Below are positions 12,727 to 59,122 of a DNA stretch of 64,000 nucleotides, one piece after another. Numbering within the stretch: position 1 is the stretch's first letter; each line of letters starts with the position of its first letter. A program made the translations under genes and the position numbers. Source of the DNA: Lepidodermella squamata (taxonomy: Eukaryota; Animalia; Gastrotricha); assembly GCA_047495785.1 (NCBI GenBank), contig JBLDXI010000006.1, positions 186,001 to 250,000 of the forward strand, written 5' to 3'. The notes beneath the pieces were generated by a model. It was not told the DNA's origin. It saw nothing but the letters and a program-made list of their open reading frames with translations, and made no database searches.

Positions 12727-13672
12727 CAACCTTCGCATTTTACTTTTCTAGCCTAACAACTAAGAACTACGAACTATGATATTAGGTTCAGAAATGAAAT
12801 AAAACAGCGAAGACTAACTTTATAAGTGTTATACGTCAAATTGGTCGAGTCACAGAGTGAAGTAAGACAACAGAAATGGCTAGGATTAGGACTAAGTTCC
12901 TACTATCCGGCGCTCTCTGAGCCGAGTTTTGAAACCTCGCAAGCTTGATAGTTCAAACCTCAATATGTTCCAGCGATCAATTAATCCTTTACAAGCCTCC
13001 GCATTACGTTGATCAGTTTGAGCAGTGATTCATAATATAATGCGTAATGCGGAGCCAGCGAAATGACCAACGGACCGTAGATAACGAGGCGCATCTATTT
13101 CGGCTAATTGTCTGTGTCCGATTGACAGTTTGCATAGATTAGATTACTTTGCATTAAGACAAACATTTCATGTCCCAATGTTGCTTGATTGATATGGGAA
13201 TAAATGTGCACATTTCCTCCGAATATAACGAGAAACATCCGTGTCTTACAGGCGGAAAACTAGATTAACGGAGGCAATTGTCATTTCAAACCTAATCCAT
13301 ATAATTGATTACTTAGCTACAGTTAATTCAATTTCAGTATTACAGTTTGTGACGCAGCATGATGCTTCAATCAAAGCTGTATTTACTTCGAACCACCTAC
13401 GCCGCCACCTGGAAACGTCTACGTCTGTTTGATGCTCGTGACTGCGTTTCTTGAATTTGATGGCGGAAGTTGGTTCTCTTGATGAAAAATTTCTCTTCCC
13501 CGGACGGCTGAAGCTAAGTGCAGTTATGACAATGTGATGGCGTAGACGGCGCATCCGCTGTTGCAAAATACAAAAAGCTTGAAAAAAATAAACAGATAAG
13601 CCGCTTCATAACATCTATTGCACTATAAAAGCTTGGACTTCGATTGAATTATCAATACAATTGTTGCCAAAA

Positions 13673-16168
13673 ATGTGGGAAGTGATTATTTTACTCATAT
13701 CAAGCTGTGGCGTTATGTTATGCTCGAAGCAATTTACCTTGAAGATACCGATGAATGCCCCGATAGGCGGTCCTGTGAATCCTATGGGGGCTGTTTGCAC
13801 TGAGGCTGTAACGATGGCTTTAGACGCTATCAATTCAAGCCCTGACATTCTGCCTAACTACAAAATCCAAATTGACATGGGCGATGATCAGTGCCTATCA
13901 ACTGCCGCGCAGGAAATGAGCCTAAACTTTTACAACAACCTGAAACCGGTTGTTCCAAGCGCGAAAGTTTTCGGCAATCTAACCCTGCCACTTCGGACAA
14001 ATTTCTCCGGCGAAGCTTATGTTCCTCCTATATTTTTAGGAGGACTATGCTCCCCTACATGCAAAACAGCATCAAGGTTACCACAGCACTTCGGGTTCAT
14101 GAATATTCTTATCGGTTGCACTGAGCCTCAGTTTACGAATCGCAAGCTGTACCCGAACTTCTATCGATTCGCCCCATCTTTCGTTGAAGTTGAGAAATTT
14201 CGAGCTAAGCTGATGCTCTACCTCGGCTGGAATCGCATGGGCTATCTAGCAGATGCTGTTCAAACAACTTATGACGACGCCATCTATTTCGCGAAGGCAA
14301 TCCTCGGGGCTGGGAAGAAAGTAGCTGCGGAGGAGTTTTACATGGACGACGCGGGTATGTTTGAATCCCTAGCTAGGATGAAAGCAGCTGATGTCAGGGT
14401 AATCTACGGCAACTGTTACGTCAATTTCTGCCCAGCTATGGCATGTGAGGCTTACCGAAAAGGCCTATGGGGGCCTAACGTAGTTTGGATCTTCAATTCA
14501 TGGATTGATGTAGTCAACGGAATTCTCCCACCAGGCTGCACGAGAAGAATGGTCCAGGAATTTGCGGAGTATTCGCTGTACATCGGACCCGACTTTATGG
14601 CGAATTCTCAGCCTAGGAGCTACAAAACTGAAATAGGCATAACTTTCAAGCAGTTTGATGATTACCTATCCACGAAAGTGCCTAACCTTGAGACCCATCC
14701 AGCGTTTTCTTGGCGAATCATTTGCTTCGATGACGTTCTCATCGGAGCCAAAATCCTTCACAACGCCGAACTGGAATTAAACGAACGTAACGAGACGCTG
14801 AAAGACATAATCCGAGATGAGAGAAGGAAAGGAGAGTTAACCGACCTTATTCGCGAGAAGTCTATGACGGTCGAAGCTAACGGAATTTATGGTAACGCCG
14901 CGTTTCTACCCGGAGGTGATGAAGCGATAAATCCGCCACTTATTGTCGAACAGCTGTTCGAGGGCATCCGAAGCACGGTTTTGATCACTAGAAATCGAAG
15001 CATTACAGATCCACAGAAATATTTCGAAAAAATGGCACCGTTGAGATGGAAGAAAGCCAAGCCGAATACGGAACCTCTTGTCGCTCATAGGAAGAACGTT
15101 GTCGCGAGTCAAACTGTCAGTGGGTTGATAGCTGCAACAGCGATTATCGTCTGCCTAAAATGGTTCCTACAACTCGTTGGATTCATGCTCAAGGTCACAA
15201 ACACCTTTGATACCTTGATATGCCTGGGCTCCACTATGATGGCTACTGCTGTGTTGATTCACCCGATTGAAGGCTCGAATCTTCGGGGGTTGGGTATCTT
15301 TTGTACTGCAGTCGGTCCCCTGACCATTTTCGGCTTTGGTCTGATAACAACAGCGATTGCAGTGAAGCTATGGAGCTATCGTTACGTTGAGGCGGAAAGG
15401 AATACACCACTCCACAAAGCGATGATTGTCGTTGCGTTGTTGATTGAAGCCTGTTTAGTTCAGACTTGGTATCTCGGAGAATCAAAACCCCAAGCTTCAA
15501 TGATTTCGAAAACGTACTACGAGGCTGAAATTGACACTGTGTGGAATGAGCACACCTACTTGTGCACTTTCATCGATGAGGATACTAGCCCAAAAGCAGC
15601 TTTGGCTCTCCTTGGTTTTCAAGGTCTCCTTCTGACTGTAGCATTAATTCTATCGATTAGCTCCACTCGGAGACGAGGAAGGCAATCCTCATCAGGCCGT
15701 ACAACTTTTAAAACAAGGCTTAGGGCTCAGCCTAGAACAACCAGAGTTCGGCCACGAGTTAACCCTTCTTCTGCTGGTGAAATGGGGAGTAACACCAAGT
15801 TAACTTTGGAAGATTTTCTCTTGAATCAGGAGGTCAAAAACACGGCATTAGCTCTATACATACCGACATCTCTGCTTCTCCTATGCGCTTTTGCCTACTC
15901 AGTATTTGCTGATTCGCCAGCTGGCTTAATTGGAACTCTCTCAGCATTCACATTAGTTACATCGGTGTCGATGACCTTCATCCTGCAATGGCGCACGATC
16001 AAAGTCTCAATGTGGAAAATGGGCTACAAACGATTTGAGATGAACAACTTTATGACGGCTAACGAGGGAAGGATAGAATCTATCGATCGCAGCTCTTCTA
16101 TTTTGTCTGGTGGGAACCTTGGCGGAATCAGCACTGGAAATATGTTTCCGAGAGATAATGACCAGTAA
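13673..16168 (+). CDS. Intronless class C GPCR, GABA-B-like
   Basis: Signal peptide MWEVIILLISSCGVMLC; VFT motifs MALDAINSSPDILPNYKI, DDQC and FTNRKLYPNFYRF; C-terminal 7TM. Confidence 0.88.
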   Translation: MWEVIILLISSCGVMLCSKQFTLKIPMNAPIGGPVNPMGAVCTEAVTMALDAINSSPDILPNYKIQIDMGDDQCLSTAAQEMSLNFYNNLKPVVPSAKVFGNLTLPLRTNFSGEAYVPPIFLGGLCSPTCKTASRLPQHFGFMNILIGCTEPQFTNRKLYPNFYRFAPSFVEVEKFRAKLMLYLGWNRMGYLADAVQTTYDDAIYFAKAILGAGKKVAAEEFYMDDAGMFESLARMKAADVRVIYGNCYVNFCPAMACEAYRKGLWGPNVVWIFNSWIDVVNGILPPGCTRRMVQEFAEYSLYIGPDFMANSQPRSYKTEIGITFKQFDDYLSTKVPNLETHPAFSWRIICFDDVLIGAKILHNAELELNERNETLKDIIRDERRKGELTDLIREKSMTVEANGIYGNAAFLPGGDEAINPPLIVEQLFEGIRSTVLITRNRSITDPQKYFEKMAPLRWKKAKPNTEPLVAHRKNVVASQTVSGLIAATAIIVCLKWFLQLVGFMLKVTNTFDTLICLGSTMMATAVLIHPIEGSNLRGLGIFCTAVGPLTIFGFGLITTAIAVKLWSYRYVEAERNTPLHKAMIVVALLIEACLVQTWYLGESKPQASMISKTYYEAEIDTVWNEHTYLCTFIDEDTSPKAALALLGFQGLLLTVALILSISSTRRRGRQSSSGRTTFKTRLRAQPRTTRVRPRVNPSSAGEMGSNTKLTLEDFLLNQEVKNTALALYIPTSLLLLCAFAYSVFADSPAGLIGTLSAFTLVTSVSMTFILQWRTIKVSMWKMGYKRFEMNNFMTANEGRIESIDRSSSILSGGNLGGISTGNMFPRDNDQ

Positions 16169-21221: not shown

Positions 21222-23693
21222 TCACAAAGGTAGAGGGGTTGTTTTTCGATACGCCATTCTTTCCCAGCCCGTTCTAACCAACGGGTAGAAAAACGTGAAT
21301 GACGTCACAGCCGACATAGCTAGACACCCGAATGCGATAACAATTTGCTGTTTAACAGGCGATTGTACAACAACGATGACTAAAATTGTCGCCATTAACA
21401 AAATGGCTGCGTTGTTAGTCGCGTATTTGATGCAGAGGTGCTCGGGGCACTCGACATACCGCGCAGTTTGGCTAATTTGATACAAGCACAGGACAGCTAC
21501 GCCTAGGATTAGCAGATGTAAGAAGCTGATGGCGAGCACCCACGCTAGGTTGTGCTTCGACCGGCAATACGCAACCGATGTTTCGATGTAGGTATCAATT
21601 TCAGGAAAATAAGCCGTCTCATCTTCGACCAGGGTTTTAAAGCATTTCAGCGGATCACACAACAGCCAAATACCGACGATGATCACCTTGATAACAATGA
21701 ATCCTACCGCCCCTCCAGCGGCGACTTTATCGGTTTCTAGCAGGATATTACCGGGCATACGAACCGGGCCGCAAGAGGTGTCTGGCCGTTCCTCGGGGCT
21801 CTGAACCCTTAGAATGGTCAAATCTTGCGGCAAAACTGGCACCGGGTTAACCAGGATTACACTGTTCCTAGGCGGCGGGAAGGCTAATCGGAACTTTGTT
21901 GTTACTCGATCAGCCGGTTTCCGTTTCAGCTCGGTCATATGCATGGTAGGGAGGTTGCGTATCTGAAAATTCCGCATCTCCCCCGATACAGTTAGCACTC
22001 TCAAAGCAAGTATGCTGTAGACAAATTCCAGACCGGAAGCGAGTGACACAATGCGTAGGACCCAAGATTGGAATGGAGCTACTGAAGTCGGCATGGCGAA
22101 TGCGACAGCAGCTGCGTCAAGTAACAGACACCCGACGTAGCCGAGGCACTTCGAGCGTGGGAAATAAAATTCTTCCTTCCGTCGTAACCGCAATGTCACG
22201 AAAAGTGACGCAAGCTGCAGCAGACCTAGAGCGATCGAGATCGAGTAAACTGACTTGAAAATGTCCTCCCCAACCTCCGTAGTCACATTCAAAACCCGAC
22301 GCCTGTCATTAGGCGGTTTCCCCTTCCAATCAGTCCAGTTGAATCTCATGTTTGAAACTGAGATAAAATTGCGAAATTCACTCGCATCCGTATCTGACTT
22401 GTGCAGAGTCTTTTGAATGGAGAATAAAGACCTCGTCTTAGGGTTGTAGTAAGATATTGTTCCACCATCCGCATTCAACTGGCCGTATTTGTTGTACCTC
22501 AAAGGGCCGATTCTCAGGCCATTAACCGTGGAATTTGCAAGGGTTTCATTCACAATTCTCGCAATAACATTAGGTTGTTTCGGGTAATCTCTGAGAGATA
22601 AATTTCGAGAATTCAATACCTTCTCCGACTGGTCGAGGGTAATGAGGCCTTTAAGGACTGTATCATGACAAAGAACTCGGAAATCGTAATCACCTGGCCT
22701 GGAGTAATTAAGGTAATTACGATCGAGATAATCGTCAAATTGCCTCATCGTGTAATTAAGATGGCTTTTTACGCCATCGTCATAGCTCATTAGCAATGGT
22801 CCGACCCAAAATACGTATTTAAATTGTTCGAGAATCGTCGCGCGTGGGCAACCGGGTAAAACAGGGTCTGGTAGCTGCGCCGGATCTATGAAAACCACCG
22901 AGTTAACAATGAAAGCATAGCGAGGGCCTTTCAGGCCGTATTTATGGGCAAAACATAAAAATCCATAGATTAGCCGATCGGTCGACATGTAACTAACAAT
23001 GATTCGAGCATCACTCGCAATTAGACCAAGCATTGAATCTTCGTCAACCTCGAGTACAACATTGAAATACGAAATTTCGATTGAATTAGCAACGGCAGCT
23101 CTTTGAAGCACCAAAGCTGTAGTGTAGTCGTTAACATTCCCAGCATTTGTTAAAACAGCTATCTTTCGCCATGTGGGGATGTCTTTCAGAAAATGAACAA
23201 TAGTAAAAGCCAGGGTATTGCCGCCAGATAGCATTAGGTTCAAATTCGGGAATCTGTTCCGATCTAGAAGAATCGGAGCCGCGCATAAACTGCTAATTTC
23301 AACTTTGTTAAGGTGGTGTAAAATCGGCCCAACTGCCTTGCAGCCAGTCGATAGGTAAGGCCCGAGAACTATAGGGCTCTCATAGGTATTGTTCGACGCA
23401 TTTCCAAGCTCAAAAGTCCGGCCGAACTCGATGACGTGTCTCGGAGGCAATAGACCAAAACCCTCGTCTTCAAACGTCATTTCGACGGTAAAATCAGGCA
23501 AAATTTCGGCGTTTTGGTTGATTTTTGCGACGACGAAATCAGCTGCAGCTCGACACGCCTTGCCATTGTCCACCTTCAGCCCGCCGTATTGAACAATGTT
23601 CAGTATTTTAAGAATATTTGGCTTCACCAACTTGGACTCGGTAGCAGAGACATTTAAAACAAAAATTGGAAAGATTACAAAAAATATAAGCAT
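21222..23693 (-). CDS. Intronless class C GPCR, GABA-B-like
   Basis: 823-aa ORF with signal peptide, VFT motifs (KINQNAEILPDF, LLDRNRFPNL) and 7TM (WLLCDPL...YCRS). Shares lineage motifs with 2766-5126 (FLCFAH..G..GP.Y.F). Confidence 0.88.
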   Translation of the reverse strand: MLIFFVIFPIFVLNVSATESKLVKPNILKILNIVQYGGLKVDNGKACRAAADFVVAKINQNAEILPDFTVEMTFEDEGFGLLPPRHVIEFGRTFELGNASNNTYESPIVLGPYLSTGCKAVGPILHHLNKVEISSLCAAPILLDRNRFPNLNLMLSGGNTLAFTIVHFLKDIPTWRKIAVLTNAGNVNDYTTALVLQRAAVANSIEISYFNVVLEVDEDSMLGLIASDARIIVSYMSTDRLIYGFLCFAHKYGLKGPRYAFIVNSVVFIDPAQLPDPVLPGCPRATILEQFKYVFWVGPLLMSYDDGVKSHLNYTMRQFDDYLDRNYLNYSRPGDYDFRVLCHDTVLKGLITLDQSEKVLNSRNLSLRDYPKQPNVIARIVNETLANSTVNGLRIGPLRYNKYGQLNADGGTISYYNPKTRSLFSIQKTLHKSDTDASEFRNFISVSNMRFNWTDWKGKPPNDRRRVLNVTTEVGEDIFKSVYSISIALGLLQLASLFVTLRLRRKEEFYFPRSKCLGYVGCLLLDAAAVAFAMPTSVAPFQSWVLRIVSLASGLEFVYSILALRVLTVSGEMRNFQIRNLPTMHMTELKRKPADRVTTKFRLAFPPPRNSVILVNPVPVLPQDLTILRVQSPEERPDTSCGPVRMPGNILLETDKVAAGGAVGFIVIKVIIVGIWLLCDPLKCFKTLVEDETAYFPEIDTYIETSVAYCRSKHNLAWVLAISFLHLLILGVAVLCLYQISQTARYVECPEHLCIKYATNNAAILLMATILVIVVVQSPVKQQIVIAFGCLAMSAVTSFTFFYPLVRTGWERMAYRKTTPLPL

Positions 23694-24437: not shown

Positions 24438-27022
24438 CTAGGATCGTTGCGAATTAGCTAAATCAACCACGATTTGGTTATTTACAGGTAAGGGGGCGTC
24501 TTTCAACGAAGACGTCATGGTGACAGTTTGTTGCTGCCCCATTTGCAGTTGCTGGGCCAACTGACTAGCCGCAAGAGCTGCCTCCAACTCGTTCCCAGTC
24601 CCAGCAACCATAGCCTCAAGGGACGCTTTCCGTTGCGTCGCAGCTTCTTGTTGCCTGGCTACCTCTAACATTGCATTATGAACAGCAGGAGTTACGACTA
24701 GCAACGCAATGGTTGACGTCAGGGTTATGATGACGAACGCCCAGAATAGGATGCGGTCGACCGCCCTAGCTAAGGACTGCCATTCCCGTAGAGATCGCGC
24801 TGAATCCGCTTCAAGAGCGTATTGGCTGGTCAAACGGTCTATCGCATCGGCGATTTCTTCGTACAACCGCTGAATCCGGCTCGAACAGTTTGAATTGTAG
24901 GGCGGCATGTAGCCGTTGAGGCCAACAGCGTTCATAACTCGAGGCATCATCGACGGCGCGAAGGATTGGTACTTGGTACCGCCGATGCTTCGGATAGGCG
25001 AGCGGTGTTTGTTGAATTTGTTGAGTGAACCGAACTCACCGGCGTCTAACAGCTCTTCATTTTCGCTGTCGAAGAAGTGCTTATTCGCGTAGTCAACAAA
25101 CGTGTCCCTCGCTCGGTTTTTCTGCTGTTGGTGGTGGTTCAGCACGTACATTGACATTTCGCTCGGGTCTTCGAAGCCGGATGGCTGGAAACCGCGGTTC
25201 ATGTGCACGACCAATTCGTCGCGATGAGGCGTGGCTGAGGGTGGTGGAGCTGGTGGGAATTGGTCGTCGATTCCGCCGAACATCACCATGGACTTACGGT
25301 AACGAAGTAGGTTGTTCTCAACACGTCGTATGGCCTCATCTGCCGGGCTGATTTCTTGGCTTGCTTTCAGGTCTTCCTTATTGCAGAAACGGATTAGGAG
25401 TCGGGCGAACTTCGGGGGTCGCCGTTTGACACCCAATGATGGTCGGTAGTGAAGACTTAGGACAAGGACAGTGAGGCAGACGGAAATTGCTGACATTGAC
25501 ATGACAGCAGTGAGGTAGATTGAAATGAGAGGAATAAACTCTGAAAAATAGCATTAAGGAGGAATTTTTGTAAAAAATTCAAATTACTTACCGCTGGTTT
25601 CTGGGAGCTTTTCTGTCACGGAAAGCATAAACACGGAGAAAGAGAGGAGTACCGTGATTCCGAGCTGAAAATGGGCAATTTATTTCGAATGACTCCTCAT
25701 GTTGACTATGACTTACCGCGCATTTTTCTCCCGAATCTGGAGGTAGTAAGAAAGTGAGCAATGTTAGCGAAGACATGATGAAAGTTGGGAAAAACACGTT
25801 GAAGAGGTAGTAGAGCGTCTTGCGGCGCATGTTTATGTAGAAGGTCAGGTCGATGTAAGGCTCTTCGCAACAAGTGTATTTGACCACGTGGCGGACTTGG
25901 TACGCCGATAGCACGTCCCATTCTCCGTTTAGGACGAAGCGGCTCAAATCGACCTCGCCCACACGACCGTGTAGGTCGACCTTCCAGCCATCGTAAGTCC
26001 AACTTCCGAATTTCAATCGACATTTCTAAATTAAAAAAAGTGGGTCATTTTCTTAGAAAAATAAAAGATATAACCTAATTTATTATTCAAATTAAACAAC
26101 CGTAAAAATCGTGAATATTCAAATTAGTTACCTGAGTATCGAAAGGGAAATAGGTCACATCAATCTAAGGAGAAAATTTACGAATTATTTGTGTTTAATT
26201 ATTGGCTATAATCACCGTGCAAGAACTGTAAAGCTTGACCGGGACGCCTAGGAAAACATTCCCATCATGGCTGATCATCGCTCGAATATCGACAGGCTTT
26301 GTCGCATAATCAGCGGCACTGTTACCAAAAAAACATAGGATGATTGATGATTTTATTCCAAAGCTCACTTGTTATAAAGCACCTATGTGAAAAATTATCT
26401 CAATTAGGATGAATGCTGAAGAAATGTTATAAGCTTACGATATCAGGCGTCCAGATTCTACCGGCTGGTATTCGAATCGTGTAAATACCGCCAAATCTAG
26501 CCGGATCCCAGTTTAAAAATTCGTCGGTCTTGATCGGAAATAAAATCCATTAAATTCGTGAACAAATACTAAAATAACGACAAATACGTACCCACTCGTG
26601 ATCTATCCAGACATTTGTAATAAGCATTTGATTTTTCTGTTCGAAACAAATTAAAAAATTTAAATAAAACTCAAAAGTGATAAATTACCTCATCCAATTC
26701 GAATATTTGGTTAACAGCTAGTCCAAGCCCGATTTTAATGATCGTCGACGAATTTTTGACTGGGCGAGTTAGAGGGTTGTAGTGCCGAACTGTGGGAAGA
26801 GAATAAATTTCGAAATATTTAATAAATTTTTAAAATACTCACGAATTTCACACAGCAGTCTCTGCTCATCGGGTATCTAAAAATATCGCGAAAATTTCAG
26901 ATTTTTCGTCGAAAAAGCTTTGTTGTAGTTACCCTATCAGTGTTTCGAGTATCGCACGGGGCTGATGTGGCGATTTGAAAATTTGAAAAAACAGCGAATA
27001 AAATAGCTGTTACAAATAGCAT
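24438..27022 (-). CDS. Nicotinic acetylcholine receptor alpha-type subunit (multi-exon)
   Basis: Signal exon MLFVTAILFAVFSNFQIATS; WTPDI-VLYNNA; Cys-loop SSCT-IDVTYFPFDTQ-KC; GSWTYDG; loop C YTCCEEPY with vicinal cysteines; M2 LPPDSGEK..LGITVLLS; M4 VDRILFW. Confidence 0.92.
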
Positions 27023-37065: not shown

Positions 37066-39404
37066 TCATGTGCCATAATACTGCGTTCCTTGTAGATTCT
37101 CAAGCGCTGACTTGGCGATGTGCTGATCGTAACTCAAGGCTTCCTCCATTATTGCCTTGTGGAATGCACCAAACAGCGGTACGACAATGAGGGCGAGCAG
37201 ACACATGCCAAACCCGATCCAATTAACCGCATAGGCCAGGTACCAAGCACTCTTCGATTGCGCAAGCCGCCTGCCGCTTTCGCTCTTACGGCCATCTTCT
37301 TGCTGGTTGTCTTTCCTAATGGACCCAGAAGAATTTTGCTTCTTGATCTGCCGGTTTTTCGCTGACATGACGCGATGGATTTTCAGCGTAGATCTAGCCC
37401 GGATTGAGTTGTTGCGAGGCGATCGTGATTGATTGCTAGTAACGTGGGAAATACAGTCTTCGAACTCGTCGCCATTGCTCAAAACGTCTACAACAGCGTC
37501 CTCGCTCAAACACCGGCCGTTCTGGATGGCAGCAGCCCGCGTACGGAGGCGGGCGTGGAAACCGGGGAAAAGGCGTTTTGTAATGAAATTAAACACCTCC
37601 GGAATACCCCACGGCGCAGAGATGAACTCCCCTGGATCGACAATTGCTAGACAGATGGTTGTCACGAGAATAGTCATCGCGGCCGCGCAGAGTATGACGG
37701 TGAGATAAATTGTTAGGTAGCAATTCGCCGAGTTCTTCGGCAGTTTCTCCGCGACCATCAGCTCGAACAGGGCGACGGCAGTGAGAGTTGTCACTGATTG
37801 GACGGGCCGATCTACGTAATGCACGGGCACGAGGTAGTTTAGCAGGGTTATCACAGCTAGAAGAATCGTAGGCAGCACGACGGTAAGGACGAAGAATGCG
37901 GATCTACGGCGCATGACTAGCACGAAATGGATGCGACTGAAAGCCGTCCGTTCCCCAGTTCGATAAGTTGCAGAATGGCCGCCCACGCCATCGGATACCA
38001 GCTCCCAGACCTCTATAACAGATAGCTTTAACATGAATCATGCCAAGGAGAGGGCAACCATACCGTTCTCAGCAAGCATGCCCAGAGAGACTGCAGCAGG
38101 TTGATCGTCAGCTCGTATTGCTAGGCGCAGTTCGCGTTCTTGGAATATCGCTGATTCCTAACGGTAACGTAGCCATCAATGAAAATTGAGTAGAGCTAAT
38201 CAATAATATACTATTATAATTGAGCATCGTTGAATGTCGTATGGAAAGAAAGTGTGGTCGAATTTGCAGCGTGTTGAGATTTTACCGGTAGGATGGTACC
38301 AAACGTTGCCTAGAAGAAGAATATCGGCATCAATTTTTGAAAGTTGGGTTTAAGGAATCGCTTACCATCACTGTGCAGCCGGTATGGAAAGGAAGTGTCA
38401 CGCAATAAATCGTCCATGCCGTCGATTGCATTTGAGATCTGCATTGGAGGAATCCATAACATTTCTTTCGGAACGACTATTTCTTTGACTCCGCCGAACT
38501 GTTGAGGCGACCATGCGATCAAAGGATCACGCCAAGTCTAATAAAATATAAGGCACACATAATATTGAGGAAGGCAGTGAAGGCGAGAGTAATTTCGAAT
38601 TTTCAATTAATTTTGAATATTCACAAACAATTCTCAAATCGAAATCTGTTCACTGATTTCATCTTTCATCCCGCGCTTTTGCCGATTTTTCACATAAAAA
38701 GTAATGAATGTTTAAGGAAAACTGTAATCAAACATACAAGCTGTAGCCGAATTGTGGCATGCATTGTTTCGGTGGCCTCGTCCAACTCCTGAACTCGAAT
38801 CAAATAGAGGCGACTTCTCACGACCAGCGTGTTGTTGATGCTCAACGGGTTCATCGGTTTCACAAATTTGTTGTAGCCACCAGCTGCCGTCAGCCTTTTC
38901 AGTAATTCGTATTCAGGTACCTTGGATTTCGCTTCAATGATTAAATAAATTTCAAAATATTAGGACCATTAAGATCAGAAGAGATCTGAACGTTGTTGTT
39001 TGCATAAAGAAAATCAATAAATTCTACTTTCTATTCTAAATTAGCATTAGCTTAATTTGAGGCTTTCATTAATAATTGTTATTACCCTGGTACCATGGGC
39101 TAATAAGAAACATTTTCAATTAAATGTTCAGTGAAGTCACCTATAGGTAATAAGCTACAGTAACAGGTTACCTATTGGTAACAATCGATGGGTGAAAAAT
39201 TGAGATTCTAGGAAATCGTTTTTTTGAAAAATCGTGTGCCGCTGGAGTCTCAAATTGAGCTAATAAATGAATAGAATAAAAATTAAGGGATATTTTTTTA
39301 CCTGAGATGGCGTAGCGTATTTGATCACCGCTGTCCATCGATTGACAGCGACAGGTGTCGATTAATTGGAGCAGTAGGGTGACTAAAAACCCCGAGGCCC
39401 TCAT
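37066..39404 (-). CDS. Divergent Cys-loop ligand-gated ion channel subunit (non-alpha), copy 1
   Basis: Signal exon MRASGFLVTLLLQL; LWIPPMQISNA; Cys-loop CKFDHTFFPYDIQRC; MRRRSAFF-M1; M2 DRPVQSVTTLTAVALF; M4. No vicinal cysteines. Confidence 0.85.
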
Positions 39405-50275: not shown

Positions 50276-50575
50276 TCATTTAAAAAATTTTAAAAGAATT
50301 TTTAAGCTGGCGTTGTTTAGAAATTTCATTAGGGCTGGGCTTTCTCCAGCAAGTGTGCGAAAAAATTCGCTTTTTTTGGTCACAAAGTTCAGATCTGCCC
50401 CTTGCTCGTAAAGATGCTCGAGGGCCCGAACTTGGCCAGTCATAGCCGCCAACATAGCCGGCGTATGCCCCCAGTCATTTTTCGCATTGATATCAGCTCC
50501 TCTTTCGATAAGGTGTTTCATAAACCTGAGCTTGCCCCAGTAAATAGCACTCATCAGTGCGTTTTCTCCAGTCAT
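50276..50575 (-). CDS. Two-ankyrin-repeat segment (mini-gene, orphan exon or fragment)
   Basis: MTGENALMSAIYWGKLRFMKHLIERGADINAKNDWGHTPAMLAAMTGQVRALEHLYEQGADLN. Gene boundaries are unresolved. Confidence 0.55.
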   Translation of the reverse strand: MTGENALMSAIYWGKLRFMKHLIERGADINAKNDWGHTPAMLAAMTGQVRALEHLYEQGADLNFVTKKSEFFRTLAGESPALMKFLNNASLKILLKFFK

Positions 50576-51317
50576 TGTGTGACCACTTTTTAGGCGGGAA
50601 AAAAGCCTCTTCTGATTGGTTGATTCGAATAAAAGCGCGATTTTCAAAAGCTTGATTTTTTTATTGTATAAAAACATTATTTGTTTGTTGACAAAATAAT
50701 TGGTCGAAAAATTAAGAAAAAAATGACATGACGATGAGACGCAGCAGGCGTGACACAAAAAATTGATAGTATAAAAAATATCACCAAGTCATCAATGAGC
50801 GGGCAGTCAACAAATCGATAAAAAGCAATGTTAGACAAAATAATAATTTTTAACGCTAGGAAACATTAACTGTTGCATAGATAAACAAGAACCGTTTGTA
50901 TCAAACTATCACCAAGAATGCGATCACACAGTATTAATATTTTACCTCGAATACTAGTTTTCAAAAACTTCGACATTATGAACTACCAGAGACAATCATT
51001 TTATTGTAAGGAGGACAATAATAGTTCGTGAACTTTTTATAGAATTAAGAAATAGTAACAGAAAAATCATTGAAATATCGCATGAGGCATTTCAATAATA
51101 TGTTTATTTAGCATAAACACGTGATCATTACTTTCTAAAGGAAGACATTAAAAAAAGCTTCCGAGTTCATTTATCTAAACTAAATTCGCACTTCAATGGC
51201 ACAAACTAAGAGAGCAATGCACCATACAATATACGATCCAATATTCAATTAAATCGAATACCGAAATTCGGTAAAAATTCTAAACCGATTTCAAAATTTC
51301 CGAGAGTGATGAAGCAA

Positions 51318-52077
51318 TCAAGGGAAGACGACGTATTGCGCAATGAGATCACGCAGCTTTTTAACGACAGCAGGCTGAGTTCTGGGGCCGAAAACGTCGT
51401 CCCAGGCAGGGCCAGGCTTGAACTTGCGTCGCAGAAGAGTCGTTAGCTCAACATCGGACAGCCCTTTCTTTATCGCAGCGAGATTTTGGTCAGCGAATTG
51501 CGCAAGGGCGGTGAGTTCACTCTGAAAACAGAAAAACCGTTATTATTTTGAAAATCGAGCGGTTGATTTCGCGCACCTTGAGGTATCGATGGCGAGTACC
51601 CACAGAAAATGCTGGTGCAGCATCGATGAGTAGACTCATAGCCTCAAGCACAGAAATCGAAGCGGCGCCCAACACAGTAGCATTGTTCACGACGGTGCCG
51701 TCGGGACTAGCAGCTCGAGAAGAGCGGCGCGACGAATTAGTGGAGCTAGCGAGGCTAGAGCGACGAGAGCCTGATCTAGAAATCGACGCCAGCGCCAGTC
51801 TCGCGACAACCTCGTCAAGGTTGGTTTCTAGTAAATTTGCAACCATTTTGAAATGAGGCGGTTCATTGGCACTGAGACGGAACGCCCTCGCTACCGCGGC
51901 GTCTTTGTTAGCCGTGAGCCAATCTTTGCCGTCAAAGTATTTAAACAGTAACGGAAAGTTGGCAGCTGTATAGGTGAAGCGATATTCGGCTATCGCCGCT
52001 TCTTGCAGTTCGGTTATTGAGGCCGCCTCCAGCTCGACGAGACGAGTGTCGGTCTCGTAAGAGAGCTTGGCCTCCAT
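51318..52077 (-). CDS. PB1-like domain protein with Ser/Arg linker and small C-terminal helical domain (2 exons, 234 aa)
   Basis: MEAKLSYETDTRLV...LFKYFDGKDWLTANKDAAVARAF follows the PB1 pattern (Lys on the first strand; KYxD-x-D OPCA-like motif). A phase-0 55-bp intron (51522-51576) leads to exon 2, SELTALAQF...KKLRDLIAQYVVFP*. Confidence 0.7.
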
Positions 52078-52586
52078 TATTTAAAAATTTCTCTAAAAAC
52101 AAACATGGAAACGATTTATTAAATGGAGGAAGACAATAGGAGATCATTTGTAGCGGTAAAAAAACTGGAGTTTGAGAACACCGTGAGATTTGAACGATGA
52201 GAACCATTTCGCATGAAACGCCGTTTTGTCGATCGAGAAGAGTTTGCTAGAAAGGGTTTCCAGCTCTCCCAACACAACTTCCATCTCACCATAAGTTAGC
52301 GAAATTCGCTTCGAGGCGATACGACCGAATCTAAGAATAATTTTCAATAAGGGAATAGGGGGAAAATTCGAAAATACTTTTTAAAAAGTTTCAGCGCGTT
52401 GCAACGAGTAGAAGGAACAAAGACAGCACCACCTCGAGGTAGCAAATTTCGCCGTCTACAGTTTCCTCGCCGGGTAGACAAGTAGTGAGCTATCATAACA
52501 CGAATAGCACCTACTAGTTCGGCCATCAATTCAAAACAATTAGTCTGAAATGACTATTTAAAATTAATTTTAGAAAATAACATTTA

Positions 52587-54789
52587 ATGGATGACATTCC
52601 GATTGCCAGGGTTCCGGTTGGTAGAAACATGGATGGAACTCCTGCGCTTATTCGAGGGGTCGCAGCAGTCATGAAAGCTGGGCGCCGCAGACCACTACGC
52701 AAAAATTTTTGGGAGCTAAGTAGGCAACAAAAACTGGCACGCTTGCGAATGGCTATTGAAGACTATTTGGCCAAGTTCAAAGATTCACCCTCTTTTCGCC
52801 ATTTTATTGGCGGAGCGGAAGTGGAGCAAATGGAAATGCAAGTTAAAATGAAAGATCTCAATTCTGTTTCAGTGTCAGATCCACCTGCGGAAAAAGCTAG
52901 CTTAAAAAAAGCTAACACTTGCGGCGAGTAAGTTTTTGATATCACCGATACTTATTCTCTAACTAGCAGTCTACAATAAAAGAGTCGCTGATATTCAAGC
53001 TGAAAAAATAGTTCCGTCTCGATCTGCATACCCTATCGCGAAAAAATTGGGGCACAGATACATCTCACGGCGAGGTTTATCAAAGGCGCGGAAATTACTT
53101 TCTACCGGAATGAAAATAAGCGGAGTCAACTTGGGTATTAATTTTCAGAATTAATTGAAAATAACTTTCAAATTTAAATCAAAATGTTATTAGGCGAGTC
53201 AGAGACTGGTGTATACATTGCATTGGCTGAATACTTGGAGAAATGGGTTGCAACCGGTCATTTGCGCAAAGACAGAATCAACGAGATAAGATTTCAAATT
53301 GATGGTACAACGCGCAGAACATCTGTCGGCGAACCTTTAGTTCAAGCGACTATTTGCTTTGTTGCCAAGAAAAGAAAACCTGGCCTCGACGAAGAGTTCC
53401 AATTGGTTATTTACGAGGGTAAAGAATCCTACGAGTCGGTAAGACATTACTTGACACCAATTATTGATGAACTGGTGAAATGGGCAACCGAAGGAGTTGA
53501 AGACGCCAAAGGAAACAAGTACAAAATAAAAATTATTCTTGTTTGCGATTACCCCATGCTTGTATGGATGCAAGCTTGCGGGCACCAAAGTTCTCATCAT
53601 GGATGCATTTTTTGTACCGTCGACTTCAGATTGGGCGATGGGAATGGAGAGCCTAGGCAGTTTCATTTGATAGAGCAAGAGCTATCACATTTGAATGCTC
53701 GCCAGAGAGAGGCTTTGGGTTGGCATGCACTTCTACTCCCAATGTTCAAGCTACCGAGCTCAGCATTTGAAATCGCACCTTGTACGCTACATCTTGAAAC
53801 TTGTATCACTGGATCGGCGTTAGAGGCGGTAAGAAAATGCATTTAATGCTAGCAGTAATTGATTTAATAATGCTAGATGCTGACTAAATTCAAGCGAGAG
53901 CACTTGACAAGTGCATATCGCAACATCGCGATCATCCTTGAAAGAAGTTCGAAAAAACTGACAGTTCAACCATCAACGACAAATCCACAGAAAGTCAGCA
54001 TAACTCGAGCGAACCATTACGCAACGACTAATGTCAGTAACTAACATAATGAGTAATATGTGATTCAACTCTAGATGAACTTTTCAGTCTCTGAAATGGC
54101 TAGCGATGACGGGGAGTTTATTTCAGTACCTGGGACCCAACTGGCACTTGGAAGTTATTCAGGGGCTTTATGGCCGGGATGTTGCTTTCTACAAGCGATG
54201 GCTTCTTGATAACCATCGCATACGGGTAAGAAACAATTGGACACTTGAGGAGATGCAGCTAAAAGCCATAGAGAAAGGTTTGGAAAGGGAGGTGAGTAGA
54301 CTTGAGAAGATTTCAGACAGCGTCATCCTCCTAATTTCAAAAAACTTTCTAGAAAATTCAAGAGCTGCACAACTACATCTTAAACTGTGATGAGCTGCTC
54401 AGGTCTTGCAAACGCGTTTTCGAGCGCATTGATGGAATGGATTTGCGGGGAGACCCGGAGGAGGATTTTGTTGGATTCGAGAATTCATTTCGGCAAGTTG
54501 TCGGAAATCTCACGACATATGCTCACAGTAAAGAATATTGCTTTGGAACAAAATATAGCTTATGTTATGAATTATTTCAGTTACTGCGCACCACGTTTTG
54601 CCACTGTTAAGAAGAGGCATTAATTTGCGGTTGTTGTCAGCGGAATCGATTGAAATTCGACAGAAGCATTTAAAAAGAATGCTGTCTATGACCTGTCCCG
54701 CTCTTAAAGACTCTATCCCCCGCCAGCTAATGAAACTTTTCGTGATGAGAACGAACCAATATTGGCGAAAAAAACTAGCTGGACGATGA
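52587..54789 (+). CDS. RAG1/Transib-like DDE transposase/recombinase (7 exons, ~627 aa)
   Basis: Exons 52587-52923, 52967-53134, 53194-53828, 53877-54032, 54088-54291, 54353-54527, 54581-54789. Motifs: GRRRPLRKNFWELSRQQKLARLR (NBD-like), FQIDG, VCDY, CIFC, CTLHL, TTYAHITAHHV, SAESIE. Intron 1 needs a GC donor or a 1-nt frameshift. Confidence 0.8.
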
Positions 54790-55038
54790 AACAAAAGCAA
54801 AAGAACCAAATAATGTTCCTAACCACTGAGCGCGAAAGATCAAATAAAGTTGAGACTTGTGATAAGATTTCCTTAACCGGTGTTTTAAAGTGACCGAAAG
54901 GCATGCGGAATTCGTGTGTTCATGATGGAATGTGAAATAAACAATGAAACGTGCTGACAAGCCGTATGTCACAACTGGCGCGAACAACTTCCAGGAACGT
55001 GAGGCAGCTGACGCAGGAAAACAATACAGCGGATTCAA

Positions 55039-57178
55039 TCAGCGCGCTCGCGCACTATTTTGACGCAAAATCATTGATAATATAAAATTATGAATTAATA
55101 CAGAAAACACGCTATTGATGTAAAAATTATTTTTGAGACATTTTGAATTTTCGCGCTCCATATTACGGTCCTGAGCCAACCAATCAGAATCCTCGACAAA
55201 ATTGAACTTACAGCTGGTTCTACAATCATGGAATGGATGATGAGCAGCCATTACATGGGATGTAGTAGATTCAGTCGTAGTAACAGCCTGAACGATGGCT
55301 TCTTCTTCGTCCCCAACCGAGTCATCGATTTCCGCAGCTGCTGAATTGTAGTCGAACGCCGAGAAATTATAAATTGATTGTGATCTATATTTTGGCTCTG
55401 CGGCATCCAAGGCGATCAAATAGGCAGACATATCAGCTTCGTCAGCTCCTTTTATCAGTAATAGTTCAACCATGTCTTGTCTCGAAAGCTGCCTGGCTAA
55501 TGTAAGAGCTGTTTGACCGCCTTTAGAGCGAAATCCTAAATCAGCCCCATTTTCGATTAGCAATTTGACCATTTCAATGCTCCCTGATTCAACGGCCTCC
55601 ATCAGAACCGAGTATCCGCGGTGAGAAGTCGAGCTGACATTAGCCTTATGACGGAGCAAGAGCTTCGTAAAATTGAGGTTGCCGTTCTTCAGAGCTGTAA
55701 CAAATGCCGAATCGCCCCACTCCGGTTTGAAGTTGACCTCAAGCTCGCTAAAATTGTCATCTGCAACAATCTCATTTACGAAGTCGTCGTCGTTATTCTC
55801 AATAGCCATAACCAAAACGGCGCGATGGCTCCTGTAATCTAATTTTTCTCCTTTAGCTTTTCTGACCAGCAGTTTTATCATGTTGTAATCATTTATGTTC
55901 AAAGCTAGGGCCATCGCACCTCCATAACCTGTGTAGGCCCCAAGTTCCCCAAGAAGTTCAACAATGTCGAAATTGCCATTTTCGACAGCGGCAGCTAACA
56001 GGTATTCTCCAGACTTGGCATTCACCTTCGCGCCATTTTCTACAAGTTTCCGGATAGAATCTGTGTCGTTTCTGTTTACTGCTTCAAACAGGTCCAGGTT
56101 GAGGTAGGTTTTATTTCCCACTCGATCGATCAGAAATTCGATCATCTCGACGTATGGATCCTTCTGTGACTTGGCGATCCCAAGAATACTCCGACCAAGG
56201 TTGTCTACAATGTTGGTTTTAGCTCCATTTTCGAGGAGAAATCGCAAGATCTCGAAATGTTTCTGCACAACAGCTATCATCGCAGCCGTTCGGCCATTTT
56301 CATCTCTATCATCAATATCCGCCCCACTCTTGACTATAAGCTTGACCATCTCTAGATTTCCGTTGCAAACAGCGGCCTTTAGCGGAAAATCGCCCTCCAG
56401 ATCGATGATATTGATATCAGCCCCATTCTCGATGAGCAGCCTAGTCGTCCTTATAGAATCAGCTTGGACAGCTTTGATCAAAGCGGACTGGTATCTCTTA
56501 TTTTTCTGGTTGATATTTGCCCCGTTTCGGAGCGGCAGTTTAACAACGTGATAGTAATCTCTGCCAGCTACATCCATTAAGAGGCTATTTTCCTCATAAC
56601 CAGGGGCTGAATTTATGTCCGCTCCTTTATCGATCAGCAACTGAAGGATTTCGGTGTAGCTTTCCAATAAACTCTCCGAATAATACATTTTCGCAACCGC
56701 AACATGTATCAGGGGCGTCTTGCCATTGTTAATTATCGATGGAAATTCGAAATTCGGGTCGAATCGGTCTTCAGTAGCATTATTTATGGCATCAATAACA
56801 TTTCGAGTCGATTCAACGCTTGTTACTTTGTTAAATTCACGGTAAATGTCATAAGTTGCCTCTGATACCTAAAAAATCAATCATTTTACTGTTAGTTGGG
56901 CTGGTTAGTGGCATTCCACTTTTTACCTCACATGGCTTGCTTGAGGGATTCCAGCGTCCTTTGACACAAGTTAAATTTAGAGGCGGTTTCCATTTGTAAC
57001 CTGGTGGGCATTCGATGGTTACAGTTGAATTTCCAAAAACTTCCGTTCCGGTAGGAAGAGTTCGATTGTTCGATAATTCGTAGAATATTTTGAATGGATC
57101 ACTCACAACGCATTTCACATTTGCACGAGCATTTAGGAGGGCTACCTCCAAAAAGAGCAGCAGCAGAAAAAACTTCAT
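55039..57178 (-). CDS. Signal peptide - Sushi/CCP - multi-ankyrin-repeat protein
   Basis: Exon 1 (57178-56927) encodes MKFFLLLLFLEVALLNARA plus a C..CPPGY..C..GRW..PC sushi. A 58-bp phase-0 intron (56869-56926) leads to exon 2, which is open into the 549-aa ANK ORF (roughly a dozen repeats) and an acidic/Thr-rich tail. The 3' end is uncertain (possible donor at 55211). Confidence 0.82.
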
Positions 57179-57917: not shown

Positions 57918-59122
57918 TTAATTAGGCTTGACGACAGCCCAGGAGACGTCGGTCTCGATACCACAGATGTTCTTGCCCTTGGGGATGCGGAAGTAGCCAG
58001 CCTCACCTGGAATGATTTATCAAATAATCATATAATTCGCTTGAAAAAAGGTGAAAACATACCCCAGGAGCAGCCCCAGCTGTTGCGGACGATCCAGTAG
58101 TCACCATCCTTAGCATTGCGGCCATAGCCAACGATGACGACGGCGTGGGTGGTGTCAGTAGCCAGAACGTTGGAACCGCACATCTCCCCCTTGAAAATGC
58201 CACTCTTGTAGGCGAAAAAGTCATCACCCTTCTTAACCTTGATGCCAACGTTGACGGGGCCACCACGGAGAGCATCCTCAATCGACTTGATGCTGATATC
58301 AGGCTGACTTGGGTGCCACTTCTGTAGTTGGCCGACAGCGAGAACAGTGAAGCCCTTGGCATCAGCAGACTTGACATTGCAGCTCTGGAGAATAGCGGCG
58401 TAGGGGTAGGAAGCAGGGCCGTTGTAGCCGGTCCTCTTGGTCTGGAAATAGTCATAGACACCAACGGCGCTGCCTCCGTCGCAACCGTTGTTGTACTTTC
58501 CCAGGGAGCAGTCGACAATCTGCTGCTCAGACATGGGCACGGCCCTGGTCTGGCCGGTAGACAGGGCAAGACGGGTTTCCAGCTCGGCGATGCCACCGAA
58601 AGCGTAGCAGGAACCGCACTTCTTCTGGTTCTTGATCGGCACCATAACGCAACGCCAGTCGACAATTACGCCGTCGTACTTCTGATACGGAAGGATGGTG
58701 TTGTCCTCGTTGGTAGAAACCTGGCGGGCGTAGGCGCGAGCAGCGGGATGAACGAACTGCTCGACCGACGGGATCATCGTGGCGTTGGGAGCCTCGATCG
58801 GTTTCTTGGTAGCGAAATACGCGAACTGTTCTTCGAAACTGTCGTGGCAGTTCTCGTTCAGGCCATACTCGACGTCGTTGTCCTTCTTGTCAAACAGGTG
58901 AGCTTGGATCGCGTTCTTGATGACGTCAGCCTGGGCAGCCTTGTGCTCAGCGAGACTGTCGATATCCTTCGGCAGAGGGAACTCCTCGGCGAATTTGTCG
59001 TAGATGGGATGACAGCCTTCGAAGGGCTTGTCGGCGGTTACAGCGGATTGCGAGGCTGCATCCTCAGCGAAAACAGCGCTCAGAGAAGCAGCGGCGAATG
59101 CCACCAGAATGAAACGAGCCAT
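57918..59122 (-). CDS. Papain-family (C1A) cathepsin-L-like cysteine protease
   Basis: Signal peptide; NQKKCGSCYAF, SEQQIVDCS, GCDGG, THAVVIVGYG and RNSWG. Intron 58007-58062, then GEAGYFRIPKGKNICGI...*. Confidence 0.92.

Follow-up and report, generated by a model that had tools for sequence, protein, structure and literature searches.

A 64,000-nucleotide window of the Lepidodermella squamata (Gastrotricha) genome contains two intact, divergent genes that we regard as probably constituting a 3,954-bp two-gene cut-and-paste DNA transposon (positions 50974-54927) on the CMC (CACTA/Mirage/Chapaev) side of the CMC/Transib clade. The element is most likely intact or only very recently immobilised, and the most probable reading of the locus is a rare mobile element of two genes, one of them an unusual helper, rather than a special relative of RAG1. 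A first-pass annotation had suggested that the locus might be a two-gene RAG1-related transposon; its two-gene transposon is also our best reading, RAG1 kinship aside.

The first gene encodes a transposase. On the plus strand, between 52587 and 54789, short open reading frames previously proposed to splice into one protein of ~627 aa indeed join, as splicing is read from the sequence, into seven exons forming a single open frame of 623 aa, and all six introns (55, 59, 48, 55, 61 and 53 nt) have GT..AG borders:

52587-52927, plus strand: transposase exon 1, with a basic GRRRP motif at residue 32
52983-53134, plus strand: transposase exon 2, defined by frame and aligned to metagenome relatives
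53194-53828, plus strand: transposase exon 3, which contributes D201 (53301), D283 (53547) and C302/C305 (53604-53615) of the RNase H-like core
53877-54032, plus strand: transposase exon 4, with an IT.ANHY motif kept in relative P0004
54088-54291, plus strand: transposase exon 5, defined by frame
54353-54527, plus strand: transposase exon 6, with H554 at 54524-54526
54581-54789, plus strand: transposase exon 7, with H559 (54592-54594), E576 (54643-54645) and E579 (54652-54654), stop included

The predicted splicing is supported by relatives that align across three of the junctions. Specifically, the exon 2/3 junction is spanned by alignment to one unbroken ORF in metagenome contigs L001-L003 (E 1e-29 to 2e-30), and the exon 3/4 and 4/5 junctions by alignment to relative P0004, which carries 17 extra residues exactly at the site of transposase intron 3. 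Read-run searches at the locus returned DNA-like contigs only and no RNA evidence, and the gene models are sequence-predicted.

All the RAG1-core-like motifs listed in the first-pass annotation are present in the spliced protein, in the order given there: GRRRPLRK (starting at residue 32), FQIDG (198), VCDY (281), CIFC (302), CTLHL (361), YAHITAHHV (552) and SAESIE (574). The aspartates at 53301 and 53547 are D201 and D283, as proposed, and they belong to a DDE and zinc signature comprising D201, D283, C302-x2-C305, H554-x4-H559 and E576/E579. The glutamate at 54652, equated earlier with RAG1 E962, is E579, but E576 (54643-54645) fits at least as well when compared by eye, in an ungapped manner, with relative P0007 and with the RAG1 spacing; the third catalytic residue is thus ambiguous by three residues. 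D283 and C302 are 19 residues apart, the same spacing as between D708 and C727 of RAG1. Motifs of this kind do not point to RAG1 in particular: the CMC/Transib clade as a whole has C(2)C and H(3-4)H motifs, together with CA..TG termini and duplications of 2-5 bp (PMC12730594). The supposed resemblance of exon 1 to the RAG1 nonamer-binding domain was dropped, given that exon 1 has no Pfam match and that the N-terminus is not kept in the closest relative, L001; the GRRRP region may represent an AT-hook-like basic motif, as yet unproven.

The second gene occupies two exons on the opposite strand and encodes a protein of 234 aa, with the ATG-to-ATG gap of 509 bp given in the initial description:

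52077-51577, minus strand: partner exon 1, 167 aa, with a PB1-like N-terminus, a Ser/Arg-rich linker and a helical stretch
51576-51522, minus strand: partner intron, 55 nt, GT..AG
51521-51318, minus strand: partner exon 2, encoding 67 aa and the stop, its frame and splice acceptor being read from the sequence
51808-52077, minus strand: PB1-like domain of the partner, about residues 1-90, from language-model features
51706-51789, minus strand: Ser/Arg-rich linker of the partner, about residues 97-124, read from sequence
51345-51467, minus strand: weakly LEM-like segment of the partner (Pfam LEM PF03020, sub-threshold)
52078-52586, no strand: divergent intergenic region, 509 bp, presumed shared promoter

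The partner N-terminus looks PB1-like by language-model features only, all 28 matches at or above 0.9 in an Atlas feature search with residues 1-92 being PB1 clusters (181 of 256 features shared), but Pfam returned no PB1 match at E up to 10, and no sequence homologue of the partner was detected in homology searches. The single-sequence AlphaFold model of the partner has a pLDDT of 38. The C-terminus may be weakly LEM-like, the sole Pfam family returned for it being LEM PF03020 (E 0.17, profile positions 3-39 of 40), with a score of 11.9 bits that falls below the family cut-off of 24 bits. Its best PDB matches are to the emerin LEM domain (E 1.7, not significant); the Pfam and PDB results agree, each being non-significant. 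A Myb/SANT-like C-terminus, suggested by sequence pattern, was dropped for want of support from any tool. No neighbouring gene was found beside transposase relatives P0001 and P0007, which lie on contigs of at most 2.6 kb.

Candidate element ends at 50974 and 54927 enclose both genes:

50972-50973, no strand: candidate left target-site duplication, GA, the same dinucleotide as follows the right end
50974-50983, plus strand: candidate left terminus CATTATGAAC, CATYATGAAC pattern, with an inverted match at the right end
54918-54927, minus strand: candidate right terminus CATCATGAAC (read on the minus strand), inverted copy of the left end
54928-54929, no strand: candidate right target-site duplication, GA

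The candidate terminal repeat is only ~10 bp long. The CATYATGAAC pattern occurs three times in the window against 0.30 expected, and 15 of 1,000 flank shuffles (~1.5%) also yielded a CA-starting pair with at least 9/10 inverted matches plus a 2-bp duplication, under criteria that were set post hoc. The third CATTATGAAC site (24674) falls within the ORF of a ligand-gated channel and probably arose by chance. Long terminal inverted repeats were sought by an inverted-repeat scan and local flank alignment, which yielded nothing above shuffles, and no subterminal repeats common to both ends were found. A 14-nt inverted pair (51101-51114 and 54930-54943) was rejected as the ends: it neither begins with CA nor has a matching duplication, and its match is no better than chance. 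The window contains no second copy of the element, and neither a second full copy with different flanks nor an empty site was seen. The candidate duplication of 2 bp is within the 2-4 bp CMC range and is not canonical for Transib; a 5-bp duplication with CAC-heptamer (RSS-like) repeats was not found, the provisional CATTATGAAC/CATCATGAAC pair with GA being the only candidate ends.

DNA reads reveal structural variants of the locus. In run X1, contigs with junctions 51398|52089 and 52317|53148 have a depth of ~42x versus ~85x for the full form, and loose ends at 51514 and 52551 bound a region with ~26x extra depth. Junction 51398|52089 recurs in run X2, from a separate study. Under an inferred depth model, these values fit a deletion derivative together with a dispersed fragment. 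The deletion form may be an allele of this locus rather than another insertion, because the depth of the right flank approximates that of the full and deleted forms summed. The 690-nt skip at 51398|52089 was rejected as an intron: it has GT..AT ends on the plus strand, removes the start codon and is present in DNA contigs.

The affiliation of the transposase was assessed from its fold over residues 166-376, the C-terminal half (exons 4-7) being judged by motifs alone, and from its sequence relatives. The predicted fold aligns with RAG1/Transib structures, and together with the motifs it identifies a RAG1-type catalytic fold, namely an RNase H core with a zinc module. RAG1, BbRAGL and HzTransib are its best solved-structure matches; to our knowledge, no CMC transposase structure has been solved, so RAG1 and Transib lead the PDB fold list by default. 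When compared with predicted structures, the transposase model matches DUF1280, Transposase_21 and DUF1258 clusters (TM 0.63-0.71), and the 60 nearest matches of the Atlas shape search include no cluster of RAG1. DUF1280 corresponds to Chapaev, DUF1258 to Mirage and Transposase_21 to CACTA (PMC3985635). Only nine relatives, none exceeding 36% identity in the same search, were recovered from 1.84 billion representative proteins, and a profile search added P0010, carrying PF06918; a metagenome scan with the family alignment returned no relative. DUF1280 is matched by four of 10 family members and Transposase_21 by two, with relative P0007 (E 3e-4 to exon 3 in the search of 1.84 billion proteins) reaching 1.3e-20 for DUF1280. 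Direct Pfam scores of the transposase are sub-threshold (E 0.0065, obtained by exon 3 itself against Transposase_21, and 0.26). The RAG1 Pfam models PF26100, PF26101 and PF26104, all among the models searched, matched neither the individual exon pieces nor the family members at E up to 1-10, and RAG1/Transib chains in the PDB were matched neither by phmmer with the single sequence nor by the family profile. By both sequence and predicted structure, the closest relatives of the transposase are CACTA/Mirage/Chapaev-type transposases. Of the RAG1/Transib-like recombinase proposed initially, there remains a DDE transposase with a RAG1-type fold and zinc motifs; a specific kinship with RAG1/Transib is not supported.

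Three alternatives to the CMC-type transposon can be envisioned. Under one, the transposase genuinely belongs to the Transib/RAG1 lineage and is accompanied by a novel partner other than RAG2, as its top solved-structure matches, its language-model neighbours, which include RAG1 RNase H/ZnC2 clusters (0.95-0.96), and the 19-residue spacing would suggest; 2-3 bp duplications also occur in some Transib lineages (bioRxiv 10.64898/2026.08.26.747230). We consider this very unlikely, in view of a fold ranking obtained by default, blank RAG1 Pfam, PDB sequence and profile searches, named sequence relatives in DUF1280 and Transposase_21, and a shape search that points to CMC families instead of RAG1.

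The other two alternatives concern the unity and mobility of the element. A domesticated pair, that is, host genes fixed at a single locus with a shared bidirectional promoter in an immobile element, would be in line with the intact frames, the short and host-like introns, the lack of long terminal repeats, the single copy in the window and a flank depth compatible with allelic variants. However, one DNA run contains, at roughly a third of the depth, deletion forms in which both genes have lost their 5' parts, and the first deletion junction recurs in the second run, neither of which is expected for essential host genes; moreover, the candidate CA..TG ends and 2-bp duplication bracket exactly both genes, and a search for orthologues found none. 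Domestication is thus an unlikely explanation. Even less credible is a coincidental adjacency, in which the PB1-like gene would be a fast-evolving host gene without relation to the transposase gene, or its remnant, that it adjoins by accident: the partner does lack detectable homologues and any sequence link to transposons, and the proposed ends are weakly supported, but these ends enclose both genes, the head-to-head spacing of 509 bp is tight and the deletion haplotype hits both genes.

If the locus is a CMC-type transposon, its 623-aa DDE transposase, in whose RNase H-like core a C(2)C...H(4)H zinc module is predicted to be inserted, would bind the short CATYATGAAC ends, excise the element and reinsert it by a 2-bp staggered cut. 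The second gene, presumably transcribed divergently from the 509-bp spacer, would yield a 234-aa accessory protein with a PB1-like N-terminus, followed by a Ser/Arg-rich linker, and with a small, apparently weakly LEM-like domain at the C-terminus. By analogy with TnpA of En/Spm, this partner probably has a part in building or regulating the transposition complex. The ends and the mobility of the element are inferred, as are the functions of the two proteins and their possible contact. PB1 is an oligomerisation or pairing module, and the LEM domain binds the host protein BAF, which guards excised DNA from suicidal autointegration or tethers DNA to re-forming nuclei. It is conceivable, though we would give it limited credence, that the partner is a transposon-encoded adaptor whose PB1-like part pairs or polymerises with itself or with the transposase complex and whose LEM-like part recruits BAF; the element would then bring its own link to a host DNA-bridging protein.

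The locus adds to the CMC/Transib clade a very rare, intron-bearing animal lineage, and it brings an accessory gene of a new type. Should the PB1-like and LEM-like assignments prove correct, we found no trace of an earlier cut-and-paste element that encodes a BAF-recruiting or oligomerising helper of its own, and the role of BAF in transposon self-protection would become testable in a natural system. The locus says nothing about how V(D)J recombination arose; its RAG1-like landmarks are shared across the CMC/Transib clade.

Among known systems, Transib and RAG1 have in common with the transposase the zinc-interrupted RNase H-like core architecture. By contrast, the locus has no sequence-profile match to RAG1 or Transib, its candidate duplication is 2 bp instead of 5 bp, and no nonamer-like repeat or 12/23-type asymmetry was seen; compared with ProtoRAG and RAG1-RAG2, it lacks a kelch-type RAG2-like gene, and its genes are divergent, not convergent. 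LEM proteins (emerin, LAP2 and MAN1) resemble the partner at its C-terminus, where an LSD...PGP...(K/R)KL pattern matches the emerin LEM helix-loop-helix at sub-significant level, but the partner has a 5-residue loop insertion and no transmembrane or lamina-binding part; a literature search turned up no transposon-encoded LEM protein. In plants, PB1-MULEs and MUSTANG-B genes tie a PB1 module to a DNA transposon or transposase, both having been found by PB1 searches within or up to 5 kb from MULE transposase homologues (PMC4948706). These belong to the Mutator superfamily, whereas the locus holds a probable CMC-type element of an animal, and its candidate PB1-like domain is on a separate gene.

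The CMC families (Chapaev, DUF1280/DUF1258/Transposase_21) are the nearest by both sequence and predicted structure, and the candidate CA..TG termini and 2-bp duplication would accord with them. The locus departs from them in its very short terminal repeat, its lack of subterminal repeats, its sub-threshold direct Pfam scores and a second gene unrelated to any described one. RAG2, against which the first-pass annotation had set the partner, is not an apt contrast: CACTA elements already depend on a further, lineage-specific protein, TnpA, which is not conserved between CACTA families (PMC2613891). TnpA of En/Spm binds 12-bp subterminal repeats, which the locus lacks, and differs from the PB1-like/LEM-like partner, in which no DNA-binding domain is evident; En/Spm makes both of its proteins by alternative splicing of a single transcription unit, as opposed to the two divergent genes described here. 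Like En/Spm, with its TnpD and TnpA, the locus combines a transposase with a second, apparently element-encoded protein, which in En/Spm is needed for transposition.

The plus-strand ORF fragments at 52587-54789 join, as read from the sequence, into one uninterrupted 623-codon frame once six introns of 55, 59, 48, 55, 61 and 53 nt, all with canonical GT..AG borders, are removed. This putative transposase gene is arranged head-to-head with a two-exon partner gene, the start codons lying 509 bp apart, just as the first-pass annotation had described.

Features of the gene pair
52587-52927, 52983-53134, 53194-53828, 53877-54032, 54088-54291, 54353-54527 and 54581-54789, plus strand, the seven exons of the transposase
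52077-51577 and 51521-51318, minus strand, the two exons of the partner, separated by an intron of 55 nt and encoding 234 aa
51345-51467, minus strand, possible LEM-like segment of the partner

Independent support for the predicted transposase gene model comes from alignments with its relatives. The spliced protein aligns through the exon 2/3 junction to one continuous ORF in three metagenome contigs (L001-L003) at E 1e-29 to 2e-30, compared with 3.8e-20 for exon 3 alone, and its alignment to the 266-aa relative P0004 spans junctions 3/4 and 4/5. The called ORF of P0004 contains 17 extra residues (about 150-167) exactly at the position of transposase intron 3, which the gene caller probably translated from an unspliced intron; if so, the intron position would be conserved in a distant relative. 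All of the RAG1-type motifs listed in the first-pass annotation occur in the spliced protein, in the order and at the coordinates proposed there. E579, the counterpart proposed there for the third catalytic residue, stays a candidate, but E576 is equally good in an ungapped comparison with the full-length relative P0007 and with the motif spacing of RAG1.

Judged by sequence searches, the transposase family is very rare: exon 3 retrieved only nine proteins at E <=1e-3 among 1.84 billion representatives, with identities <=36% (32% for the best-scoring match), most of them fragments from metagenomes or read assemblies. Pfam models matched by the transposase itself were restricted to Transposase_21 (E 0.0065) and DUF1280 (E 0.26), both sub-threshold; P0007 matches DUF1280 at 1.3e-20, DUF1280 is matched by 4 of the 10 family members, and a profile search brought in one more DUF1280 protein. 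For residues 166-376, AlphaFold modelling from a 10-sequence alignment (pLDDT 71, pTM 0.69) gave a structure whose elements follow the beta-beta-beta-alpha-beta-alpha order expected of an RNase H-like core. Among ESM Atlas predicted structures, this model resembles DUF1280, Transposase_21 and DUF1258 clusters at TM 0.63-0.71, with no RAG1 cluster among the 60 nearest, and the language-model neighbours of the transposase are a mix of unnamed, DUF1280, RAG1 and Transposase_21 clusters (0.94-0.97). Because we know of no solved structure for any CACTA-Mirage-Chapaev (CMC) transposase, the fold test cannot discriminate CMC from RAG1. DUF1280, DUF1258 and Transposase_21 correspond to the Chapaev, Mirage and CACTA transposases, respectively (Majorek et al., PMC3985635). 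EnSpm, Mirage, Chapaev, Transib and RAG1 are described as having in common the motifs C(2)C and H(3-4)H, termini of the form CA..TG and duplications of 2-5 bp (PMC12730594). The transposase therefore belongs to that broad clade, and the named kin identified by these searches fall on its CMC side.

The interest of the locus rests mainly on the partner gene, for which homology searches found no homologues. Its N-terminus, previously annotated as PB1-like, has no Pfam match and a single-sequence predicted fold with a pLDDT of only 38. The one positive line of evidence for PB1 is an Atlas feature search: residues 1-92 gave 28 matches at >=0.9, all of them PB1 clusters, with 181 of 256 features shared, the lower matches being other ubiquitin-like folds. 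Inspection of the same segment by eye reveals a PB1-typical K...Y.D(G)(K)D pattern, and the N-terminus is probably PB1-like. A 53-residue C-terminal piece matched only LEM (PF03020) in Pfam, over 37 of 40 profile positions (E 0.17) and at a sub-threshold 11.9 bits against a 24-bit cut-off, and exon 2 found its best PDB matches in the emerin LEM domain (E 1.7). The two results are concordant, neither being significant, and the C-terminus is possibly LEM-like. LEM domains bind BAF, and the resemblance suggests that the partner may have a BAF-linked role; a literature search found no description of a transposon-encoded LEM protein.

Neither long inverted repeats at the locus nor subterminal repeats shared by both ends were found. 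Both flanks were searched exhaustively for short inverted termini accompanied by a matching duplication. Of the eight pairs obtained, one starts with CA: CATTATGAAC at 50974 paired with CATCATGAAC, which is on the minus strand and ends at 54927, with GA beside each. These candidate ends bracket the two genes exactly, and the element so delimited also includes a polyadenylation-like AATAAA 3' of the transposase stop. Across the window the 10-mer end pattern has 3 occurrences versus 0.30 expected. Among 1000 shuffles of the flanks, 15 produced a CA-starting pair as good as this one together with a 2-bp duplication; as the criteria were chosen after the pair was seen, the evidence is no more than moderate. 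A 14-nt inverted pair (51101-51114 and 54930-54943, 12 of 14 matches), whose right arm lies 3 nt beyond the candidate right terminus, was discarded as being at chance level and without CA..TG or a matching duplication.

A third exact CATTATGAAC (24674-24683, plus strand), for which no partner end was found, lies within the minus-strand ORF of a ligand-gated ion channel (24438-25502) and is probably a chance occurrence. The genes predicted around the locus are ordinary host genes. They comprise three ORFs with class-C GPCR-type ligand-binding regions (ANF_receptor; 2766-5126, which also has 7tm_3, 13661-16168 and 21222-23693), a second ligand-gated channel fragment (37066-38034) and a papain-type protease ORF (58028-59122). 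Two minus-strand ankyrin-repeat ORFs (50276-50758 and 55039-56688) flank the pair; they may be independent genes or, alternatively, exons of a single gene that the insertion has interrupted.

A search for sequencing runs turned up no RNA run. Two public DNA sequencing runs, X1 and X2, both with DNA-like contigs, were compared with the window. X1 holds the full sequence, contigs with the junctions 51398/52089 (skipping 690 bases) and 52317/53148 (skipping 830), and contigs that exit at 51514 and 52551 into unrelated sequence absent from the window; its unitig depths (about 85, 42 and 26) would fit a model of three forms.

Forms in the X1 depth model
Form 1, full, about 85x
Form 2, without 51399-52088 and 52318-53147, junctions at 42.7x and 40.1x, 5' parts of both genes destroyed
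Form 3, fragment 51514-52551 with loose ends, about 26x extra depth

In X2, from a different study, the first deletion junction (51398/52089) is present as loose ends. DNA transposons typically leave internally deleted derivatives and dispersed fragments. The right-flank depth in X1 is such that the deleted form may be an allele at this very locus, and mobility of the element is therefore not proven.

Taken together, the locus is best read, with somewhat better than even confidence, as a rare cut-and-paste transposon with two genes, belonging to the CMC side of the wider CMC/Transib clade. The RAG1-type fold of its transposase is a clade-wide trait. Such an element would have short CATYATGAAC ends with a 2-bp duplication and would carry an orphan helper gene combining PB1-like and possibly LEM-like modules. 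That transposase and partner are instead a domesticated pair is unlikely, internally deleted derivatives and dispersed fragments in the reads being hard to square with an essential one. Still less probable is true membership of the transposase in Transib/RAG1: RAG1-specific kinship is not supported, since no RAG1 model in the Pfam library used (PF26100, PF26101 and PF26104 are present, as seen in Atlas rows) matched any transposase piece or family member, and neither the single transposase sequence nor the family profile matched the RAG1 or HzTransib chains in the PDB. We give a similarly low probability to adjacency of the two genes by chance.

The two-gene transposon reading can be compared with known systems. 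PB1 domains occur in plant Mutator-like elements and the derived MUSTANG-B genes, so a PB1 domain in a transposon has precedent (PMC4948706). CACTA elements as a rule encode a second protein that is lineage-specific: TnpA is needed together with TnpD, and the Tam1 counterpart of TnpA is unrelated in sequence (PMC2613891).
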